Of a stretch of 64,000 nt of DNA, positions 8,102 through 21,602 are shown one piece after another. The stretch lies in sequence record LT598654.1; one strand, written 5' to 3'. Position numbers and translations under genes: made by a program. Position 1 is the stretch's first letter. Every line of letters starts with the position of its first letter. The notes under the pieces are model-generated. The model had not been told where the DNA came from, searched no databases, and saw only the letters and a list, made by a program, of their open reading frames with translations.

Positions 8102-10573
8102 CTACAACAATGTTTTAGAACCATCTAAGCTGTGCAGTTGCTTAACCGATTTAGGTTCACCGAACTTACGGTCACGAACCATTCGGATTTGAATAGTACC
8201 TTTCGGAACATCGATACCAATTACTTCCGCAGGTAAGAACACTGAACCTGATTTAATCGCGTACAGTGGAGCACCGAACGTAAGTGCTTTGGCATTGATA
8301 GACTCGTTAGATAGCTTAGCAAGTTCTTTTTCTTTCCGCGTTTTATCCGCAGGAGAAATTCCCTTACTTCGAATCTCTTCCACCAATCTCGCAATCTGTC
8401 CTTTGTTGCGCTCTCTGGTATCCAAGTTACGTTTAACTTCTAACAACTTCAAGCTACGTTCCTGCTGTTCTTTTGGAACAGTCTTCAAGGTCATAAAAAT
8501 AACAACACTGATCTTAGGAACTTCACCAGGCTTCTGACCAAGAACATCAACGCGACCTTTGATAGCCTTACCATAGATTCGTTGAATGCGAACAACAAAA
8601 TCTTTGGCTTCATTGATAAACTTCTTGTTTACCGTATCAGTGTTGAACACCAGATAGTAGAAACCTTTTGGCGATTTACGAACACGGTTACCCTTTAACT
8701 TTTTGGTATCGTGCGCAAAGATAGCTGTGAACTTCTTGTCGCGAATGATAGCTTCTTGGAGTTCTTCCATTGCAGCTTTTTCATTCCCAGGAAACACAGG
8801 TTCGTTAGGCTTCCAGTCGGTGTCATCGTAACGAGGTACTTCGATTGATTCATCGTAAACTACCAGCTTAGCAGGCTTGTAGTCTTTCTCCAACATGCGT
8901 CCCATAGTAGAGAACTTGTTGAATATAGCGCCTTTGATGTACGTAATCTTTTTACCATTAAGACGTTGAACAATATCGATAACGTCTTCGGTGTAGTAAC
9001 GAATAATCTTAGCAGTACTACCGATGTTCTTTTGGTTTTCCATGAAGCTGTTGAGGTTCTTTTTAACCTCTGCAACTGTCTCACCTTCAACTACAGCAAC
9101 CCGCTCCGGCTGATGTGCGCTAGGAACAAAGAAACCGAGTAAAGTAACAGAACGCTTTTTATTATTAGTGCGTACTGTCTTCTTTTGTATTTCTTTTTCA
9201 ATTTGTTCTTCGCCCTTCTTAACAGGTCGTCCAGGTGTAACGACTTGATTACTGGGCTTATCGATTTGTTTAATATCACCATTACCTCGCGTCAGCTTAA
9301 TTCCATCGCGCTTACCACCAAAACCTTTACACTGCTTAATAAGATTTTGTGCTTCGCGTTCACTAAGCTTCCATTCCTGACCAGGTAATTCGTCAGCAAG
9401 CGCAAGGTATACTGACTTAGCACGAGGGCTATAGCGAATACCAATAACAAGACCTGGTTCAACTTCTAAATCATAACTGCGGTTGTGCTTTTTAAAGTGT
9501 TTGCTTCGAGCACCATTGAATTTGTACCAAGCGTAGTTAAGCAAACTGAAATCTTTCTTAGCACTTTCACTTAACAGACTGGTTTGGTCTGCACTGATTT
9601 GCGAGGTACTTACAGATTCAGCAAAATCAATTGCTGCCTGTTTAGCCTGTTCGTCACCAGATACAATGAATGCACCATTGCCTTTAGGAATTGTTTCATA
9701 TCGGTCAACAGGAACAACTTTACCTTCACCTGGAGAAGGGAACTTGATAAAGACTTTGAACGTGTCTTCTGTTTCATCAACAGGTTTAACTTCAACGTCT
9801 TTGTATTCCATAATGTCAGAGTACCAGTCTTTGGTTTTCTGACAAGCATCTTCCATTGTGTTTGGTTTGAAGCCACAGCTTTCACGTTTTACTTCTGTGC
9901 CTTCACCGAAGCCGTTGATTGCTCTGTGCGACCAGCCGTACCACTTACCATCGAAACGACTTTTACCGATACTACATACCTTGTTATTGCCGCTAGCCAA
10001 CTCAGGCATAATTCCTTTTTCTTCACACAGGAACTTAGCAGTTTCGGCATCACCGATGTAGTCACCGTTAATGTTATACGCAGATACCAACTGAGTAGGG
10101 TTTTCTTTAGGGCTTCCCCAACCTAAAACACAATCCTCTTTTGCCAAATAGTAGCCGTATGCAGCAAGAGGAGAGGTATCTGTTTCGACAGTACGCTTGA
10201 ACATACCGCCTTTGTTTACGTAACCTTGTTCTTCAAGAGACTTAACGAAGCTATCAAATTCGTCTTCACTTGGATCACCGGTTGGGACATTAACAGGTGC
10301 TTCGGGTTTGCAGTTTTCATCTGTCTCGTCATCCCACTCAGACCAAAGACGGCTAGGTTCCCATACTTTAGGCTTGTGCGGAATACTTGTCTGCTGACCA
10401 ATAGGTTCTACGTCAAGTTTTTTAAACGTTTGGTCATTACGCTCAATAGATGATATTTGACTAACCGAACGGAAAGCACTGAGAGATTGGAAATCAAGTA
10501 GGTACAAGAATTGACCTGTACCTGACTCAGAACACAACCGACTATGTTTAGCCACTTGTAAAATAGGGAGCAT
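8102..10573 (-). CDS. Large multidomain basic protein, probable internal head protein
   Basis: Probable start MLPILQ (10573, AAGGA RBS). Contains a YAWYKF.G...L..CK.F.GK domain shared with ORFs 44941 and 57660, and several S-x-S-A/G motifs between domains. Confidence 0.7.
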   Translation of the reverse strand: MLPILQVAKHSRLCSESGTGQFLYLLDFQSLSAFRSVSQISSIERNDQTFKKLDVEPIGQQTSIPHKPKVWEPSRLWSEWDDETDENCKPEAPVNVPTGDPSEDEFDSFVKSLEEQGYVNKGGMFKRTVETDTSPLAAYGYYLAKEDCVLGWGSPKENPTQLVSAYNINGDYIGDAETAKFLCEEKGIMPELASGNNKVCSIGKSRFDGKWYGWSHRAINGFGEGTEVKRESCGFKPNTMEDACQKTKDWYSDIMEYKDVEVKPVDETEDTFKVFIKFPSPGEGKVVPVDRYETIPKGNGAFIVSGDEQAKQAAIDFAESVSTSQISADQTSLLSESAKKDFSLLNYAWYKFNGARSKHFKKHNRSYDLEVEPGLVIGIRYSPRAKSVYLALADELPGQEWKLSEREAQNLIKQCKGFGGKRDGIKLTRGNGDIKQIDKPSNQVVTPGRPVKKGEEQIEKEIQKKTVRTNNKKRSVTLLGFFVPSAHQPERVAVVEGETVAEVKKNLNSFMENQKNIGSTAKIIRYYTEDVIDIVQRLNGKKITYIKGAIFNKFSTMGRMLEKDYKPAKLVVYDESIEVPRYDDTDWKPNEPVFPGNEKAAMEELQEAIIRDKKFTAIFAHDTKKLKGNRVRKSPKGFYYLVFNTDTVNKKFINEAKDFVVRIQRIYGKAIKGRVDVLGQKPGEVPKISVVIFMTLKTVPKEQQERSLKLLEVKRNLDTRERNKGQIARLVEEIRSKGISPADKTRKEKELAKLSNESINAKALTFGAPLYAIKSGSVFLPAEVIGIDVPKGTIQIRMVRDRKFGEPKSVKQLHSLDGSKTLL

Positions 10574-13633: not shown

Positions 13634-13984
13634 CTACCATAGAATTTTTAGCGACCAGTACGCTGCTTGAAACTTGTCTTTGTACGCAGGTTTACCGTCT
13701 TTCTTCAAGATAGCCATATGGCGTTTTCGATAACGTGCTCTGCGTTCTTTATCTTTATGCGTTGTAAAGTCTTCATAGTCTTTGTGACCAAACTTAACAA
13801 GCTTAAAGCGGTTGCCCTTCTTTGCAAGAACAACCTTTTTATGTCGAGTCTTTCCTGGGTTATCAATAGGTTTATCGAATCCCGGGAATGTCATTCCTCG
13901 ATAGACTAGCTTCTTTCCTTTACGTTCCAGCTTTTCTACGCTTTGACCTTCTTGGTCTGCGCTTAGGCTTATCCAAAGTTGCAT
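13634..13984 (-). CDS. DUF5754-like basic protein
   Basis: Probable start MQLWISLSA (GAGG RBS). KKVV...VKFGHKDYEDFTTHKDKERRARYRKRH...AAYWSLKILW matches my recollection of the DUF5754 consensus. Confidence 0.65.
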   Translation of the reverse strand: MQLWISLSADQEGQSVEKLERKGKKLVYRGMTFPGFDKPIDNPGKTRHKKVVLAKKGNRFKLVKFGHKDYEDFTTHKDKERRARYRKRHMAILKKDGKPAYKDKFQAAYWSLKILW

Positions 13985-14720
13985 CGAGTTTTTCCTCGTT
14001 AACATTCGTTTGTTTGGTACGTAATTGCTGAATAGCTCTTTGCACACTAGGTTCCCTTAGCTTTTGTTTGAAACTACTATTTGGAAACCGTTTAAGATAT
14101 TCTTTCTGTTCAATAGTGTCTAACTTGTACAGGAAAGATAGTTCATCTATAGGTGCATCGAATTTATATTTTTCTGATAGCTGAGTAATGCCTTTATGTG
14201 GATTGAGGTTTGCAGCACAAAGACCTCCACGCCAAGCAAGTTTTGTTATCAACCATCTTCTAAGTTTACCTTCTACTTTAGAACGTCGTGCAGGAACGAC
14301 ATTGGTTAGCCAAACGGGCAACGTCTTTGTGCCTTCATCTAACCTAACTACTTCTGCATTGTAGTCCGAAGTATCAAGGATAAACAGTCCTGCTTTGTGT
14401 TCTTTACACAGGTCTTTAATGAACTGACCTTTGTCTGACTCGTACAGCCATTTAGGAATACAGAAATAAAACTTATTGCAAAAAGGTAGATACTTCTGCC
14501 ACTTACTATCAGTTGCGAAATCTTGCCAACAGCTTTTAACCTCGACAATGATAATCTCACCTTTCATATTGAAAGCAACTACGTCGGCGCGTAAATTACC
14601 TCCAGATTTAAGCCCTACTTCTTCATATACGCTGTAACCCTTACCGCAGTAATAACGAATGCAGGCTTCTGTAGACTTGTTTGTTATTGTTGCTCTACTA
14701 AAACTCTTATAGGCTTTCAT
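13920..14720 (-). CDS. mmcB: MmcB-like PD-(D/E)xK endonuclease
   Basis: LRADVVAF..KGEIIIVEVKSCWQDFATDSKWQKYLPFCNKFYF matches the MmcB pattern. Confidence 0.8.
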   Translation of the reverse strand: MKAYKSFSRATITNKSTEACIRYYCGKGYSVYEEVGLKSGGNLRADVVAFNMKGEIIIVEVKSCWQDFATDSKWQKYLPFCNKFYFCIPKWLYESDKGQFIKDLCKEHKAGLFILDTSDYNAEVVRLDEGTKTLPVWLTNVVPARRSKVEGKLRRWLITKLAWRGGLCAANLNPHKGITQLSEKYKFDAPIDELSFLYKLDTIEQKEYLKRFPNSSFKQKLREPSVQRAIQQLRTKQTNVNEEKLDATLDKPKRRPRRSKRRKAGT

Positions 14721-14726
14721 ACAAGT

Positions 14727-15914
14727 TTAGAAAATAAAATCCACTCCAAGACTAATAATCTTAATATCTCCGATGTGTGATCTCTTATCTTCTCCCCAAA
14801 CAAAGTCTGCTTTGAAATCAACACGAGGCGCAAAGTCATAACGCCAAGTAATTCCTTTGAAATCAAATTGTCTCTGTCCGAACAACGTAATGGCATATTC
14901 GCCAATAGCTAGGAGGTTAGAGTCATCAACATCAGCTAACTGTTTAAAATTATTGAAATCTTGAAAATATCGCTCAGCGTGTATCGTCACAGTATGCGAT
15001 TCATAAAGTCTATATGATGCAGCCACGTACCAAGTTTTGTTGAAGCTATCTATGCTATCGGTTAATCCATAACTGGCATATTCGGAAGCTAGTGTTAGGT
15101 CTTGGTTAATCTCGTATCTAAAACCTGTATACCAATACTGTGCCTTATCGTCAATGCTTAGTGCATCGTATAGGGCACTAACCTGATCAGGCTGTGCGCC
15201 AACTAAATCTACTTGGGGTTTTATCAGACCCGCTAGGGTGTTGTTTAATTCACCTACATCAGCATCCGATTCCCAGTAACCTCCGAAAAGAGTAAATCCG
15301 CAATCGGTACATTCAAGTTCAAAGCTAAACGACTTTATATTTGAAAGTTCCGATTCTACGTAGGTGTTGTTTATACTCTCGTACAGGTCGCCTTTCCAAG
15401 AACCATATATCCAATCGGTGCGAAGAAATAAACCGTCGGTGATAAAATGCTTGGTACTAAAATCTATGCCCTCAATAACATCGAACTCATGACCTATGTA
15501 TACCGAGATAGGAAGCCTAGCAAAATTGTGTGCGTAACCTACATGCTCATACCTAGAGTAATAAAAAATAGGCATAGCAAGGCGCCCAGCGCTTACCGAG
15601 AAGTTTTGGTTTATATCATAGTTCAGATAAGCCCACTCGGTTTTTAATTCAAAGTCCTGCTTGGCATCCGCAGTAACCTGAACAATAGCTGTTAGGTCAT
15701 CTGTAAGTGCTAGATTTGCCTGTACGCCAAAGAAAGATTCATCAAATGATATTTCGTCACTTTCTGAATAGAGACCAAGTAGCTGAGGGTTTGCTTTTTC
15801 TGAATGGAGTGTCCCTACTCTAACTGAACCATACCCACTTACAGTCAAGTTATCTACTACTTGACCTGCAAATGATAACTGAGGAAGTAAGGTTAGCAGT
15901 AATAAGTTTTTCAT
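14727..15914 (-). CDS. Outer-membrane beta-barrel (porin-like) protein
   Basis: Sec signal (MKNLLLLTLLPQLSFA); SGYGS, FGVQ, EWAYLNY and GRLAMP motifs; alternating beta pattern; C-terminal BAM-type signal SLGVDFIF. Confidence 0.85.
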   Translation of the reverse strand: MKNLLLLTLLPQLSFAGQVVDNLTVSGYGSVRVGTLHSEKANPQLLGLYSESDEISFDESFFGVQANLALTDDLTAIVQVTADAKQDFELKTEWAYLNYDINQNFSVSAGRLAMPIFYYSRYEHVGYAHNFARLPISVYIGHEFDVIEGIDFSTKHFITDGLFLRTDWIYGSWKGDLYESINNTYVESELSNIKSFSFELECTDCGFTLFGGYWESDADVGELNNTLAGLIKPQVDLVGAQPDQVSALYDALSIDDKAQYWYTGFRYEINQDLTLASEYASYGLTDSIDSFNKTWYVAASYRLYESHTVTIHAERYFQDFNNFKQLADVDDSNLLAIGEYAITLFGQRQFDFKGITWRYDFAPRVDFKADFVWGEDKRSHIGDIKIISLGVDFIF

Positions 15915-16366
15915 AAATCTATCTGCCCTGATTTGATAACCAAAACAATTCGCACATCGTTGGTAACATACTTCATAGGGACATAACCTATTGCAGTTTC
16001 GTTACTAACGACATAATCAACTACTCTGTTAGGATTATCGGTATAGATAGGAGGCTTGACTTTACCGGTGAAGACTAGCTTAGACCAAGTAGAGCCGTAA
16101 CCTTGTGTGTTAGTATCTAAGTAAGAAGCAACGTCCTCTGTCACTCCTAAGTCAGATAACATAACAACACGAATGGAAGATTTGTCTATCGGGTATCGAG
16201 TTAATCGACCCATTAAAATGTTAGTAACATCCTTCCTGCTTAACGATTCAAAGTTATATTGATTAACTATGATTGCAATGTCTTCGGAGGAATTCGGTGA
16301 AGGTTGCGCACTTGGTTGAATAGCAACAAGTGACGCAATCAAAAGCAGGTGTTTCCATTTAAACAT
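15911..16366 (-). CDS. Small periplasmic binding protein ('phosphate ABC substrate-binding'-like, single-lobe type)
   Basis: Signal peptide; IAIIVN...LSRKDVTNILMGR...WSKLVFTGK..PP...VVDYV.SNETAIGYV; 4-bp overlap with the porin gene. Confidence 0.8.
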   Translation of the reverse strand: MFKWKHLLLIASLVAIQPSAQPSPNSSEDIAIIVNQYNFESLSRKDVTNILMGRLTRYPIDKSSIRVVMLSDLGVTEDVASYLDTNTQGYGSTWSKLVFTGKVKPPIYTDNPNRVVDYVVSNETAIGYVPMKYVTNDVRIVLVIKSGQIDL

Positions 16367-16376
16367 GTTTAACCCT

Positions 16377-16826
16377 CTACGGATTAAGAGGCTTTACGTG
16401 TTCACCTGAAACTTCAATCTTCATACCAACTAATGCCTTCATATTCAGAAATGTTTTAATATCGGAATCTGTAGGTTGATACTTAACGCTAGTATGTAGA
16501 TTGAACTCAGGGTGGTAAGAATGCTTCAAGCCGAAACTTTTTGATATAGCCCAATGTCTTCGTACAAGCGCAGGACACTTTAACTTAAACACCAGTGCTT
16601 TCCATTTACCTGTGCCCATAACATCCAGACCTGTAACCTCGCAAGTGTATTTGCGATCAGGTCGTGCTTCAATTCGATGAACCTCATTTTGCTCTGGCGC
16701 GTACATGAGAGTTATGTGCATATCAGGAATTAGGTCTTTAATCATGGCATCTGTAAACACCTTTCGAATCTTTAAAATGTCGAGAGGGTTAACATTAAGT
16801 GCCATGTAGGTTCCAATTTCTTTCAT
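16377..16826 (-). CDS. acb1: 2H phosphodiesterase, Acb1/T4 gp57B-like anti-CBASS nuclease
   Basis: Two HxT/S motifs (HITLMY, HTSVKY); GTYMAL, ALVFKL...RRH and E..KPL are collinear with T4 57B; similar length. Confidence 0.75.
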   Translation of the reverse strand: MKEIGTYMALNVNPLDILKIRKVFTDAMIKDLIPDMHITLMYAPEQNEVHRIEARPDRKYTCEVTGLDVMGTGKWKALVFKLKCPALVRRHWAISKSFGLKHSYHPEFNLHTSVKYQPTDSDIKTFLNMKALVGMKIEVSGEHVKPLNP

Positions 16827-17234: not shown

Positions 17235-17762
17235 TTAGCTAAAGATTACTTCAAAATCAGTTGCAGAGTATTCACGCTGGTCAAGGTAACCACCGAGAAG
17301 TTTTAAGTCTGCTTCTGATTCTTCATCACCTGCTGTACCGAAGTAAGCAATAGGTGCATAGAAGTTTGACGTAGTAATGTCAGTGATTGTCATATTGGAC
17401 GCATCACCACCGTTTGACGTTACTGCGAACACAAACCAACCTGGAATACCTTCGTCAATATACTGGAAATCCGCAGGTGACTCAGACAGAGGCCACTGCA
17501 CCATTTTAACATTGGGGAATCGCGGAGCAAAGTCTTTGTCGTAAGCAGTTACCTGTAGACAAGTATCACCTTGAGCACTAGCCCAATTAAAGATAGCATC
17601 CATGCGAAGGTCACCGTTGCTGTTAATGTCGGCGTCTTTCATGGCATCAATGTCTGCACTTGTAGGTGGTGTACCTGTGAACATAGCCAGGATTTTAACA
17701 CCCGATGCAGAAAGGCGCGTGTAATTAGAGAAGCGAACAAAGTTATTTGAAACCTGAATCAT
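17235..17762 (-). CDS. Paralog-array virion protein, short form
   Basis: 175 aa; MFTGTPPT...GWFVF...GTAGDEESEADLKL. Confidence 0.8.
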   Translation of the reverse strand: MIQVSNNFVRFSNYTRLSASGVKILAMFTGTPPTSADIDAMKDADINSNGDLRMDAIFNWASAQGDTCLQVTAYDKDFAPRFPNVKMVQWPLSESPADFQYIDEGIPGWFVFAVTSNGGDASNMTITDITTSNFYAPIAYFGTAGDEESEADLKLLGGYLDQREYSATDFEVIFS

Positions 17763-18685
17763 AGTGTGTCCTCCACGTGCTTACCTTCTAACTCGCAGAA
17801 AATTAAACGAGCTGCCTTACCAGGTTGGATAGTAGTATTTGCTACAGTCAGTTCGGCTGGTGATAAGGCAGAACCAACGTTCATCCAAATGAAGGGCCAG
17901 TTATCAATTGCAGACGAAGCACCGTGACCCCGTAAGTCAAAGAACATCATACACCAGCTAACAGGTGTTGAAGTATCTACATTGGTTGTAGGAGCAACGT
18001 TTGAAAAGAAACGGATGTGGTGCATACGAACAACATTGGTGCTGTTGGAAGTAAATACAAAGCGAATCATATTCGTATTGTAAGTAGCCCCAAATGCGAT
18101 GCGCTGGTCGGTAGCTGCTGCGGTATCGACAGAGGTAATATCTACAAATTCTTCACCTACGCTGTCCCAATACTGAACAGTAAAGTCAGCAATGTTAAGT
18201 GCATTAGGAAAAGAGAAGTCAATACCGTCAATGTCAGCATTATAGCCGAAACCAAATTCAATGTATTCACCGGAGTTGATTGGTCCTGTGCCTTCATATT
18301 TGGATTCACCTTGCGTAACATCCTGTGTTAGTAAGTCCGTAAATTCAAATTGGGCGTCAGCATCAATAGGTAACGTGGTTGAGATTGAAGTAGGTACACA
18401 CCAATACGCACCTTCACGAGTAACGTCTTCACCAGTGCCTTTAAAATCAAGACCTACTTTATCAGAGTTAGGTCTGAACTGGATTTTACCTGTTGCACTG
18501 TCATAGCTGAGAACAGATTCAACCATTGCAACACTAGCATTGTATACGCTCAATACATCAGTTGGGTCAAAGGGAATTTCTGCTTCGGTAGCTGGAATGG
18601 TTGAGTTAAACAAAAACACTTTAACGTCTTTGTTAGACAACGCACCAAACGACTCACCTAAGCTCTTTGCTTGTTCTATGATCAT
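17759..18685 (-). CDS. Paralog-array virion protein, long form with discoidin/CBM-like insert
   Basis: 308 aa; FLFNSTIPAT..EIPFD; insert EYIEFGF...FTVQYWD...IRFVF; C-terminal SW...NVGS. Confidence 0.8.
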   Translation of the reverse strand: MIIEQAKSLGESFGALSNKDVKVFLFNSTIPATEAEIPFDPTDVLSVYNASVAMVESVLSYDSATGKIQFRPNSDKVGLDFKGTGEDVTREGAYWCVPTSISTTLPIDADAQFEFTDLLTQDVTQGESKYEGTGPINSGEYIEFGFGYNADIDGIDFSFPNALNIADFTVQYWDSVGEEFVDITSVDTAAATDQRIAFGATYNTNMIRFVFTSNSTNVVRMHHIRFFSNVAPTTNVDTSTPVSWCMMFFDLRGHGASSAIDNWPFIWMNVGSALSPAELTVANTTIQPGKAARLIFCELEGKHVEDTL

Positions 18686-18694
18686 GAGTACACC

Positions 18695-19237
18695 TTATTG
18701 ATGATGGAAAGTAAATACGCTTGGAATAATAGGCGTATCACTTGTAATTGATGTTGTAGAAATTTCTAAGTCAGCGCCTGATCCCGGATTTCCTACTGTA
18801 CCGATAGCGGTATAGAAATTCTCGTAAGCAACAGACCTGTAGTTTGCAGTAGTGACTTGATCAAATACCTGACTCAGAACAAACCATGTTGCAGTACCTT
18901 CCGCTAGGTGAGCGTAGTTAGTATTGCTACTGCTTAAATCGATTTCACTGGTCTGTGTGTCGATTGCTGTCCACAGACTTGCATCGTTAGGAGAGAAGTT
19001 ATAGTACAGTTCAGTACCGAATCCGTCACACCAGCCCATCAAAAGATGGTGATGAACCATATCATCCAAGCCGTTTGCGTTCAAAGAACCAGACAGCTTA
19101 GCTGTATTGTATTCTGCAAATGTAGGCGGTGTTCCTGAAAACAGGTGAAGCAACATTTGAAAGTTACTTCCGTTTTCCTGAGAGTACAGACGATTGTTCA
19201 TTCCTAAAAGAAAAGATTGATTAAAAATCATTATCAC
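18695..19237 (-). CDS. Paralog-array virion protein, short form
   Basis: 180 aa; LFSGTPPT...ATWFVL...GTVGNPGSGADLEI. Confidence 0.8.
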   Translation of the reverse strand: MIMIFNQSFLLGMNNRLYSQENGSNFQMLLHLFSGTPPTFAEYNTAKLSGSLNANGLDDMVHHHLLMGWCDGFGTELYYNFSPNDASLWTAIDTQTSEIDLSSSNTNYAHLAEGTATWFVLSQVFDQVTTANYRSVAYENFYTAIGTVGNPGSGADLEISTTSITSDTPIIPSVFTFHHQ

Positions 19238-20271
19238 ACCTCACGGGCTTTGAAAGTAAAGTCACCAGCCAACAAAGCGCAATCTCTTCCTCTGTCTGGA
19301 GTTTTACGACTGAAAATAAATTCAGCATCATCCTCAGGACCACCAGCCGTAGCAAGCAAGAAAGCACCTTCATGTGTGTATTGCATGTATGCGCCAAGAC
19401 CTGGTGATACAGGAATAACGATAGCCCAAGTAATCTCTTGAGAGGCAACAGGTTCAGCAGGGGTAGCACCAAAGAAGCTAAACTGATCAAGTACAGAATA
19501 GATATTAGACGAATCACCTTCATCTATTTCAATACGAAGCTTGGTAGTGACTGCTTGCTCCGCAAGAACAATAGTCTGGTTATCTACCTGTTCAATAGGG
19601 CTCAGCGTATGGATCAATACCCAATCACCCGCACCCGCATTCAGAGTTTCATCCCATTTGAATACGCGCATGTCACCTTCAAACATGTTAGTGCCAGGGC
19701 CTTTGATTTCGATAGAATCAATACCGACTTCTGTAGCAAAGTCGAGGTCGAAATAGAAACCTTCCAACAAATTCTCAGGACCTATTCCAAAGAAACATCC
19801 GTATTGATGTTTAGTTGGACCGCCAGGAATAAACAACGAATCCAGAGGACTGTAGTTGTTTGAATTATGCGGGTTAGCAGGAGTGTTCAGGTACTTACCT
19901 AAGTTAGTCTCAACTGTCTGTGGGATATGACGATACTTTGATACCGAGTAATCATAGTATCCAAGTTTAGGCAAACAGATTACAGACGAAGACTTCTGAG
20001 TAAACTGTATGGTATTAACAGAGGTAGCACCTTGATTCGCCGTCAGGTAAGAACTGGTTATCATATTGTTGTAGATACCAGCCCAGTTAAACAAACGGAA
20101 ATTTTCATCAATGTTACCGTTGAGATCTGAGTTTCCGTTTTCAATAAACATTTCAAAGGGAATGTCTTCGACGGAAGCAGGAACCGCACCACCGAATGCG
20201 TAAATGAGATAGTCTGGTCCCATTCGTGTACGCATCTGGAATTGAGGCATATATGTGTTATCAATAATCAT
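19234..20271 (-). CDS. Paralog-array virion protein, long form
   Basis: 345 aa; AFGGAVPASVEDIPF; insert containing WDETLNAGAGDW; ITWAIVIP. Confidence 0.8.
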   Translation of the reverse strand: MIIDNTYMPQFQMRTRMGPDYLIYAFGGAVPASVEDIPFEMFIENGNSDLNGNIDENFRLFNWAGIYNNMITSSYLTANQGATSVNTIQFTQKSSSVICLPKLGYYDYSVSKYRHIPQTVETNLGKYLNTPANPHNSNNYSPLDSLFIPGGPTKHQYGCFFGIGPENLLEGFYFDLDFATEVGIDSIEIKGPGTNMFEGDMRVFKWDETLNAGAGDWVLIHTLSPIEQVDNQTIVLAEQAVTTKLRIEIDEGDSSNIYSVLDQFSFFGATPAEPVASQEITWAIVIPVSPGLGAYMQYTHEGAFLLATAGGPEDDAEFIFSRKTPDRGRDCALLAGDFTFKAREV

Positions 20272-20278
20272 TACTTCC

Positions 20279-21031
20279 TCACATAGTTATAGTAGGAGTA
20301 TTGGACGGCTGAGGATTCCATTGAGTCCCCATGATAAGTTTACCTGACAGAGTAGACATAGTTAACTCTGTGGATTTCACTACCATAAACCCTACGTTCT
20401 TTTTGAAAGCTGCACCTGTTGCATCACCTACAGTAGAGATAGGTTTGTTAGAAACATACTTAACCTCAGAGCTAACGTTAACTGAATTAGGTGATGCCAG
20501 TTCAACAGGGGCTTGATGGATAAAGAATTGAGTTTCAAAATCCATATCTGCAAAGTCTAAATCAATAGGTGTGACTTCTGCATTGAACGTTAGAATCCAG
20601 GGGCGTGTATCAGGTTGACCGATACTGTTTTGAATCTCACCGTCAACAGGTTGTGAGAAATTAATATCGTTAATGGACTCTACTTCGACACCTGCGCTGT
20701 AGTCTGACGCAAGAAGATATGTATAGCTGTTTGAAATTGAATCAGCTTCCACCCCTGCATCAAAATCCATACCCGTTAAGGCTACAACAATAGAGTAACC
20801 GAACATTTCGGATTTGCTGAACTGTTGACTTTCTAACAGGTACACACCTAAGACAGTGTTTGATTCCAATAAGCTATTCTTAGAAAAATCGAAACTTTCT
20901 TCAAAGGTGTATACTGAAAAATCAGGAGTAGCGTTTCCGATAAGGGAAGACTTCTTTAAGTTCTCCCCATCGAAAACCCAAGCACCAGGGTCAAACTGAT
21001 CAGCAACGTATGGTATGATTTGTAAAAACAT
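20279..21031 (-). CDS. Hypothetical acidic protein within the array
   Basis: 250 aa; beta-rich; lacks the full array motifs (only TVGDATGA resembles them). Confidence 0.7.
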   Translation of the reverse strand: MFLQIIPYVADQFDPGAWVFDGENLKKSSLIGNATPDFSVYTFEESFDFSKNSLLESNTVLGVYLLESQQFSKSEMFGYSIVVALTGMDFDAGVEADSISNSYTYLLASDYSAGVEVESINDINFSQPVDGEIQNSIGQPDTRPWILTFNAEVTPIDLDFADMDFETQFFIHQAPVELASPNSVNVSSEVKYVSNKPISTVGDATGAAFKKNVGFMVVKSTELTMSTLSGKLIMGTQWNPQPSNTPTITM

Positions 21032-21047
21032 ACTTAGTTACCTTTTG

Positions 21048-21602
21048 TTATACAGCTGGTTGCTGTGCCTGTACGTTGATATTAAAGTTTACAGTAATAT
21101 CGTTCAACTTGTAGCTACGAGTAGTGTCAATAACTGGGTCAGTCATTTCTAAATCTGCACCCGATTCGATACCACCTACTGTACCGAAGATATGCCAGTA
21201 AGAATAGCTATCTGGGTTACCGTCTATGTGTTGGAACATCCAGAACCAAGTTGCAGTAGAACCGTCTACCAGCCCGAACGCAGATTCAGCACGTTGAGAC
21301 AAGAAGAAGTCCATTTGCTTTTGCGTAGTTAAACGTCGGTTAGTTAGGTTGTTGTAGGTCAACGAAAGCAAATTCGTGTAACTACCACCTGCTAACATAT
21401 TCGCGTTGAACTCACTGGTAACCATCCAACCGTCGGCGTGGTGAGTAACACCGTTAGCGTAACCTTCAAGTTCTGAGTAGGTAGGCATCGTACCATCGAA
21501 CAAGCGCACAGTAACACTGTCTGTACTGTTGCCGTAGTTTTCCCAAAAACGTTTTAGTGCAGATGCACGGAAATCGTCGTTAACATCAATCACGTTACTC
21601 AT
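21048..21602 (-). CDS. Paralog-array virion protein, short form
   Basis: 184 aa; LFDGTMPT...ATWFWM...GTVGGIESGADLEM. Confidence 0.8.
   Translation of the reverse strand: MSNVIDVNDDFRASALKRFWENYGNSTDSVTVRLFDGTMPTYSELEGYANGVTHHADGWMVTSEFNANMLAGGSYTNLLSLTYNNLTNRRLTTQKQMDFFLSQRAESAFGLVDGSTATWFWMFQHIDGNPDSYSYWHIFGTVGGIESGADLEMTDPVIDTTRSYKLNDITVNFNINVQAQQPAV

Follow-up and report, generated by a model that had tools for sequence, protein, structure and literature searches.

A coupled porin and single-lobe PstS-like protein in jumbo phage NCTB: capture of a bacterial module with a possible role in periplasmic signalling

Several bacterial sensors depend on a binding protein, as in the MBP-Tar, PstS-CtpL, NspS-MbaA, LuxP-LuxQ and TorT-TorS systems and in the chitin system of chitoporin and CBP-ChiS, where a dedicated porin is also involved. 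Among phages, cyanophage PstS binds phosphate and serves the PstCAB transporter of the host, and the porins Lc and NmpC are prophage-encoded. We have analysed a locus of Phage NCTB, in which the genes for an outer-membrane barrel of the porin fold and for a small periplasmic protein with a single PstS-like lobe lie next to each other. The window, i.e., the whole stretch of 64,000 nucleotides (nt) that was analysed, corresponds to bases 124001-188000 of the 257,877-bp circular genome (LT598654.1), the source of which was surface water. NCTB was grouped with PaBG, Lu11 and the Dickeya and Erwinia jumbo phages, and was described as Trichodesmium-associated (PMC7412058).

The bacterial relatives of the NCTB pair resemble the above sensory systems in that a binder is encoded beside, and is presumed to report to, a chemoreceptor, a cyclic di-GMP (c-di-GMP) enzyme or a kinase. 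The binders of the MBP-Tar type have two full lobes and known ligands, whereas the binder considered here has a single lobe and an obligatory adjacent porin gene, and the phage carries the input side only. For phage-carried porins the precedent is found in temperate coliphages; the carrier in this case is a jumbo phage clade and not a lambdoid prophage. We propose, with a rough probability of 0.4, that the small protein acts on a periplasmic partner of the host and is helped by the barrel, the module being in bacteria the input side of a sensing route; this function is predicted from sequence and gene context.

The two genes and their products

Two coupled open reading frames (ORFs) with Sec signals, located between genes of the Acb1 and MmcB-like families, exist as described in the original prediction; both are on the minus strand and share an ATGA overlap (Table 1), which is read as translational coupling. 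Both proteins start with a basic n-region followed by a hydrophobic core and an A-x-A-like end, the Sec signals being judged by eye. All genes of the block are co-directional, and a sequence scan found no promoter-like site and no convincing terminator between them; terminator-like sites numbered 10, against 6.0 +/- 2.4 in shuffled sequences. The pair is single-copy in the phage genome, the 258-kb record having been scanned in pieces. In the GenBank record the small gene is represented solely by a 252-nt coding sequence that covers its 3' part from an internal start, and the signal peptide is thereby lost. The deposited annotation labels Acb1 and both genes of the pair as 'hypothetical' and the MmcB-like gene as 'Transcription elongation factor'.

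The small protein is shown by profile and model to be a predicted Sec-exported periplasmic protein, which consists of a single PstS lobe with a family-specific WSK..FTGK..P insertion. It matched the profile of its own family with E=1.7e-41, PBP_like_2 with 16.1 bits (below the cut-off of 27) and TIGR02136 with 18.1 bits (cut-off 206.6). Its model, with a predicted local distance difference test (pLDDT) score of 86, forms one alpha/beta lobe and superposes on one lobe of the PstS-type structure 1twy with a root-mean-square deviation of 2.2 A and template-modelling (TM) scores of 0.59 (query) and 0.37 (target); for PstS-type structures overall the query TM was 0.5-0.6 and the target TM 0.26-0.38. 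The cyanophage PstS structures 7xg7 and 7xg8 are among the fold matches. Compared with solved structures, the family profile aligns to chain residues 77-186 of 4q8r. Searches of the pair in NCBIfam and PHROGs added nothing decisive.

The residues W, S, K, F, T, G, K and the last P of the signature are 100% conserved in the bacterial-type proteins; the WSK..FTGK..P segment falls into a gap of the PstS alignment, and all signature residues are present in the NCTB protein. The stretch aligned to G-S-G-T of two PstS-family chains, which we take to be the phosphate-binding site of PstS, is unconserved in the small-protein family and is not among the columns with at least 90% conservation, 19 of 37 of which are retained in NCTB. 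Among the 35 mature-region columns conserved at this level in 41 bacterial-type proteins, 11 were kept and 11 were changed in all five phage-type proteins examined, a pattern that fits re-tuning and not decay. A charge reversal, with acidic phage and basic bacterial proteins, was considered and refuted, as the isoelectric points of the bacterial proteins range from 5.0 to 9.4 and are below 6 in 41 of 93. Cyanophage PstS is likewise phage-encoded, Sec-exported, of the PstS fold and without downstream machinery, and is presumed to use host partners. It has, however, two lobes (about 300 residues) against the one lobe (about 120 mature residues) of the NCTB protein, whose gene is coupled to that of a dedicated porin and whose bacterial relatives are linked to sensors and not to transporters.

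The barrel is shown to be a 16-stranded outer-membrane porin; the Pfam evidence is weak, and the family profile together with the predicted structure is decisive. It scored 24.9 bits with Pfam Porin_4, below the cut-off of 27, and E=8e-144 with the profile of its own family, of which 25 out of 33 conserved columns are retained; this family profile had no match among Protein Data Bank sequences, nor had the barrel in NCBIfam. The AlphaFold model (pLDDT 81.9) has 16 strands and loops bearing helices at residues 220-256 and 318-348. Its Foldseek matches include OmpT, OmpU, OmpF, PhoE (1pho), DcaP and chitoporin, with E of 1e-15 to 1e-12; with the first four of these the probability was 1.00 and the query TM 0.5-0.6. 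The sequence identity to the matched porins is only 8-16%. Strands 5 and 6 are joined by a 32-residue loop, whose folding into the lumen we infer from porin topology only, and family-conserved residues (G110, P115, S120, V125, G126, Y127, P135 and Y139) cluster in it. The terminal Phe, noticed in the original prediction as a signal for the barrel assembly machinery (BAM), closes the sequence ...VDFIF as F395; it is kept in 99% of 83 bacterial homologs and was also found in the barrels of two related phage contigs (L100 and L101). The 16 strands, the long loop between strands 5 and 6 and the C-terminal Phe are common to the general 16-stranded porins (OmpT/OmpU of Vibrio cholerae, OmpF/PhoE, DcaP and chitoporin), from which the phage barrel differs by its sub-threshold Porin_4 score, its helix-bearing loops and the pairing of its gene with that of the small protein. 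A phosphate-specific porin was rejected: the top 50 fold matches held general porins and none of the OprP/OprO type.

Table 1 Features of the locus, with positions in the window
Feature	Position	Strand	Basis
Gene for 16-stranded outer-membrane porin-fold barrel, 395 amino acids (aa)	14727..15914	-	ORF, profile, model, Foldseek
Last beta-strand of barrel, ending ...VDFIF, C-terminal aromatic outer-membrane assembly signal	14730..14759	-	sequence; conservation
Long loop of barrel between strands 5 and 6, residues 110-145, at position of porin L3 constriction loop	15480..15587	-	strand map; conserved residues
Predicted Sec signal peptide of barrel, residues 1-16, inferred	15867..15914	-	sequence; residues 1-18 with pLDDT <50; first strand from residue 23
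ATGA overlap of small-gene stop and barrel start (4 nt)	15911..15914	-	sequence
Gene for small periplasmic protein, 151 aa, single-lobe PstS-like fold	15911..16366	-	ORF, family profile, model
Family signature W94-S-K-L-V-F-T-G-K-x-x-P-P106, helix end and loop insertion absent from PstS	16049..16087	-	conservation; gap in PstS alignment
Predicted Sec signal peptide of small protein, residues 1-20, cleavage by eye	16307..16366	-	sequence; low N-terminal pLDDT; homologs with equivalents
Shine-Dalgarno GAGGG, 6 nt ahead of start of 151-aa gene, overlapping Acb1 stop codon	16373..16377	-	
Upstream flank, Acb1-family (anti-CBASS, cyclic oligonucleotide-based antiphage signalling system) gene	16377..16826	-	PF23474, 43.2 bits; same place in 6/6 phage-type loci
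Downstream flank, MmcB-like nuclease-family gene	13920..14720	-	PF06319, 57.3 bits; conserved backbone gene in Yoloswag and AD1

Descent in jumbo phages and the bacterial parent family

Neither protein was found in other phages, with none among 50,697 GenBank phage records and none in IMG/VR contigs, in keeping with the initial impression that the pair had not been described in a lytic jumbo phage. Five metagenomic contigs share the synteny of NCTB, i.e., Acb1, small gene, barrel, MmcB-like gene and DUF5754. The pair is present in a contig of 8.5 kb from ERR11733743 in Logan (small protein of 146 aa, barrel of 398 aa), in L100 (64.6 kb; 143 and 392 aa) and in L101 (30 kb; 148 and 392 aa); L102, taken from a 112-kb contig, has a small protein of 137 aa and no barrel that we could find, and in L005 the small gene is intact and the barrel is broken. 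Between NCTB and L100/L101 the small proteins are 40-45% and the barrels 34-42% identical, within the range of the flanking genes (Acb1 34-46%, MmcB-like 44-46%, proteins of 175 and 308 aa 33-42%), which argues for vertical descent. The phage copies were monophyletic in 197 of 200 bootstraps for the barrels and in 158 of 200 for the small proteins. Phage-bacterial distances of the small proteins are at least 1.42, against 1.0-1.08 among phages; those of the barrels are similar to each other, 1.15-1.2 and 1.02, respectively.

The GC content of the pair is 0.395 against 0.425 in the window, and both the GC content at third codon positions and the codon usage lie inside the 5-95% range of the window. 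The backbone of Erwinia phage Yoloswag and Dickeya phage AD1, with NUDIX, MmcB-like and dTMP kinase genes, lacks Acb1, the small gene and the barrel at the syntenic site. The pair is thus best described, on sequence evidence, as a host-derived, lineage-specific insert in the phage backbone with ameliorated composition. Shared synteny, monophyly, a divergence like that of the flanks and the absence from Yoloswag and AD1 together show, as far as gene comparison can, one old capture by the ancestor of NCTB-like marine jumbo phages, in an accessory slot flanked by Acb1 and the MmcB-like gene, followed by vertical descent. That the phage took over an envelope module from bacteria, consisting of a porin and a PstS-like protein with one lobe, is thus borne out by fold, family and tree. 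A chimeric assembly was ruled out, given the same synteny in five independent assemblies and the ameliorated composition.

Outside its own clade, the closest relatives of the NCTB barrel (39% identity) were found on three contigs of 26-27% GC (L006, L008 and L009), which also carry genes of phage families, with one for a primase/toprim protein (phrog_849, E=1e-34; 390 phage records hold relatives of it) as well as CysRS and a pilin-like gene. These may represent a second low-GC phage-like lineage, with the barrel preceding the small gene; they are not grouped with the NCTB clade (61 of 200 bootstraps).

The bacterial parent family is large. A word-indexed search collected more than 6,500 small proteins at E<=1e-3, an exhaustive search gave at least 3,535 clusters at 50% identity, and species-representative genomes hold at least 596 stretches. 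Most members come from Alteromonas, Pseudoalteromonas, Psychrosphaera, Colwellia, Shewanella, Rheinheimera and related marine Gammaproteobacteria, and a common source label is 'phosphate ABC transporter substrate-binding protein'. Neither the small protein nor the barrel is covered by a curated Pfam or NCBIfam family, and the bacterial members are also far below the PstS thresholds. A barrel homolog accompanies the small gene in 73 of 80 bacterial genome loci, and in an independent set of 80 metagenome loci an adjacent barrel on the same strand was present for 80 of 87 small genes; the genes of the bacterial loci were approximated by their longest ORFs. Either gene may come first, at a median spacing of 12 nt, and the spacing is 3 nt in the phage contigs L100 and L101.

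The NCTB genes match both profiles of the bacterial, Alteromonadales-type pair (a porin and a binder of about 135 aa); they are adjacent and co-directional, and the signature, the conserved loop and the terminal Phe are kept. In contrast with the bacterial pair, the phage small proteins form a clade of their own, with 11 of the 35 conserved positions changed in the five examined, and no sensor is encoded. The small gene precedes the barrel in phages, and the order differs in the nearest bacterial clade. Multi-copy bacterial genomes are frequent (L020, a Psychrosphaera with a tandem array of three consecutive pairs, L049, L064, L072, L083, L085, L088 and L104), and separate pair loci of one genome are represented by L015 and L030; the multiple copies suggest diversification for different ligands or partners.

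In bacterial genomes, signalling genes made up 20.5% of the genes at distance 1 from the pair, 9.3% at distance 2 and about 1% (4/472) at distances of three or more; the independent metagenome set gave 30.5%, 7.1% and, further away, 1.4%. The recurrent neighbours are chemoreceptors with HAMP and MCPsignal domains and, both equipped with Reg_prop/Y_Y_Y periplasmic modules, large GGDEF/EAL/PAS proteins and hybrid histidine kinases; one locus adjoins a ToxR-like Trans_reg_C/TPR protein. Sensor partners are spread over many separate clades. After orthologous loci had been collapsed, a partner was present in 14 of 36 clusters at 60% identity and in 8 of 18 at 45%; 17 of the chemoreceptor cases come from a single syntenic Alteromonas locus. 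The original prediction placed such a partner usually beside the pair. The association itself is real, with an about 20-fold enrichment beside the pair, but 'usual' overstated it, as it applies to about 40-50% of the pairs. An ATP-binding cassette (ABC) transporter was not found as a recurrent neighbour of the bacterial pairs; linkage to pstCAB was absent, and no such transporter is present in the phage block.

The absence of a cognate receptor from the phage, postulated from the window, extends to all pieces of the record. Searches of the whole 258-kb record with MCPsignal, HAMP, chemoreceptor ligand-binding, GGDEF, EAL, HisKA/HATPase, REC and Reg_prop/Y_Y_Y profiles, and with phmmer using the ToxR-like and OmpR-type proteins of the bacterial locus L002, gave no match at E<=10, so that a receptor elsewhere in the phage, which would have completed the system, was not found.

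In loci of the Rheinheimera type (L027, L046 and relatives) the flanking sensors often carry Reg_prop/Y_Y_Y periplasmic modules. Sensors of this type bind glycans in the hybrid two-component systems of Bacteroides, and by analogy this hints that the ligand of the pair could be an oligomer rather than an inorganic anion.

Retention of the two genes and the role of the module

All six phage-type loci have an intact small gene, and four of them an intact barrel. In L005 the barrel is reduced to a remnant ORF of 182 aa (L005:7708-8256), which has lost the 5' part with the signal peptide, carries one large in-frame internal deletion and terminates prematurely; its two homologous pieces share one frame. 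In L102 the MmcB-like gene begins 19 nt after the small gene, and neither a barrel nor a barrel-like remnant was found in the 9.8 kb examined of the 112-kb contig. The flanks of both loci are closer to NCTB than those of L100 and L101, which have the intact pair: the MmcB-like protein of L102 is 60% identical to that of NCTB (44-46% in L100/L101), and the 175-aa protein of L005 66% (39-42%). This points to an ancestor with both genes and to two losses of the barrel, on the basis of flank identities and not of a formal phage phylogeny. The FTGK part of the signature is degenerate in L102 alone, where WSK and the C-terminal motif of the phage clade are still present, and this fits FTGK being a surface linked to the barrel.

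The differential retention singles out the small protein as the key part, and we suggest the following course of events. In bacteria, the pair would be the input side of trans-envelope sensing: the barrel would let a solute in, and the small protein would work with the barrel and report to the sensor encoded next to it, be this a chemoreceptor, a GGDEF/EAL enzyme or a histidine kinase. During infection, the Sec and BAM machinery of the host would export the phage copies, and the small protein, as the key effector, would engage a host periplasmic partner, most likely the cognate host sensor or the host's own barrel. Through such engagement the infected cell may be biased in its motility/biofilm state or in its sensing. 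The phage barrel would assist through ligand entry or through docking via the FTGK loop, yet be dispensable.

A number of observations weigh against this proposal. A signalling partner lies within two genes in only 42 of 83 bacterial pairs, and most bacterial members of the clade nearest to the phage barrel have no adjacent signalling gene; the pair may thus function autonomously, with sensors merely listening, and the missing partner is not special to the phage. The changes at family-invariant positions could abolish the recognition of bacterial partners, and the benefit to the phage of an altered chemotaxis or c-di-GMP state is speculative. As for the loss pattern, the L005 remnant ends 73 nt from the contig end, which makes an assembly artefact possible, and the correlation between FTGK and barrel loss is a single case from the 9.8 kb of L102.

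The pair might instead serve nutrient uptake as auxiliary genes, the porin raising the flux of a limiting solute and the small protein capturing it for host transporters in the manner of cyanophage PstS. The homology to a PstS lobe with 7xg7 and 7xg8 among the fold matches, the general-porin fold with PhoE and chitoporin as matches and the origin of the phage from a Trichodesmium-associated sample (PMC7412058) would agree with this. However, one lobe on its own is unable to close around a ligand or to dock on PstCAB in the PstS manner; the G-S-G-T-aligned stretch is unconserved, the invariant residues sit in an insertion that PstS does not have and the TIGR02136 score of about 18 bits is far from its threshold. 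Moreover, inner-membrane transporters are not consistent neighbours, whereas sensors are enriched, and the phage clade lost the barrel on two occasions but kept the small gene. We consider uptake rather unlikely, and phosphate import, the first role proposed for the pair, is poorly supported by remote homology to half of PstS with no conservation at the aligned G-S-G-T. The same two losses weaken the suggestion that remodelling of the outer membrane was the main purpose, with a phage porin replacing or diluting the receptor porin of the host and thereby excluding superinfection or masking the receptor. Phage-encoded outer-membrane proteins with exclusion or masking roles do exist, among them lambdoid prophage porins and Llp of T5, and the NCTB barrel has a genuine porin fold and an assembly signal; yet it is the dispensable member, broken in L005 and not found in L102, and only about 37-39% identical to any bacterial barrel found. 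As masking needs no periplasmic partner, the universal retention of the small gene also speaks against remodelling, which we regard as very improbable.

A periplasmic effector of counter-defence or takeover that acts apart from the bacterial sensors, with the re-tuned small protein blocking or sequestering an envelope component and the barrel as an ancestral leftover, would explain why the former is found in six of six relatives and the latter is dispensable. The accessory block in which the pair is located also contains Acb1 and a Tad6-domain protein, and at 11 positions conserved in the family the phage small proteins share states of their own; both points agree with such an effector. Against it stand the cytoplasmic signals that are the known targets of the Acb1 and Tad families and, in four of six relatives, an intact barrel evolving at the rate of its neighbours. 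PADLOC returned no family match, though its library comprises defence and not anti-defence proteins. On balance, such an effector appears quite unlikely. That both genes are neutral passengers in slow decay we find extremely improbable. The broken or missing barrel in two relatives, the partly degenerate signature of the L102 small protein and the position of the small protein among the more diverged block genes in L005 and L102 are what decay would produce, but both genes are full-length with signal peptides in four lineages at 34-45% mutual identity, the small gene is intact throughout, and neither the family core residues nor the terminal Phe have been lost. The proposal that the small protein acts on a periplasmic host partner therefore remains the one that we favour.

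Gene neighbourhood and implications

The longest ORF of DUF5754 (137 aa, window 13634-14047, minus strand) runs 128 nt into the 3' end of the MmcB-like gene. A later start is used in GenBank and in the relatives (113-117 aa), and the true gene is probably shorter. Further away on the minus strand (window 8102-10573), an 823-aa protein, hypothetical in GenBank, combines a Tad6 domain (type I Thoeris inhibitor, 142.6 bits) with KMPT-N, and homologs of 919 and 828 aa occupy the same relative position in L100 and L101. Judged by the Acb1 and Tad6 matches, the block is rich in counter-defence genes. Membership of the pair in a defence system was rejected, with no PADLOC match for the pair or its neighbours.

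Upstream of the block, a run of paralogous genes (window 17235-21602, minus strand) is common to all NCTB-like contigs. Its proteins of 175, 180 and 184 aa all match phrog_17152 and are interleaved with proteins of 308, 345 and 250 aa; one protein of the run has a weak virion-structural match. A wider 'envelope channel' theme of the phage was also considered and dropped: BN7874_079, deposited as 'MscL' outside the window (LT598654.1 54329-54913, L094:5329-5913), had no Pfam match at E<=0.001, and its label 'Large-conductance mechanosensitive channel' is unsupported.

A literature search for the pair, or for porins in jumbo phages, found no description. Periplasmic binding proteins of phages, such as cyanophage PstS, and porins in temperate coliphages were known already; a coupled module of a porin and half a binding protein that is kept across a deep jumbo-phage clade appears to be new, and the losses within this clade amount to a natural experiment on which of the two genes matters. 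The bacterial parent is a very large family without a curated entry and is about 20-fold enriched beside chemotaxis and c-di-GMP sensors. As a tentative possibility that goes beyond our proposal, the phage protein may be a re-tuned 'sensor-input' protein with an optional porin, which would mimic or jam the input of a chemoreceptor or c-di-GMP enzyme and let the virus steer swimming or attachment, and the bacterial relatives may constitute a large undescribed porin-binder-sensor module. If the phage protein does act on those sensors, this would be a virus that manipulates the behaviour of its host from the periplasm.

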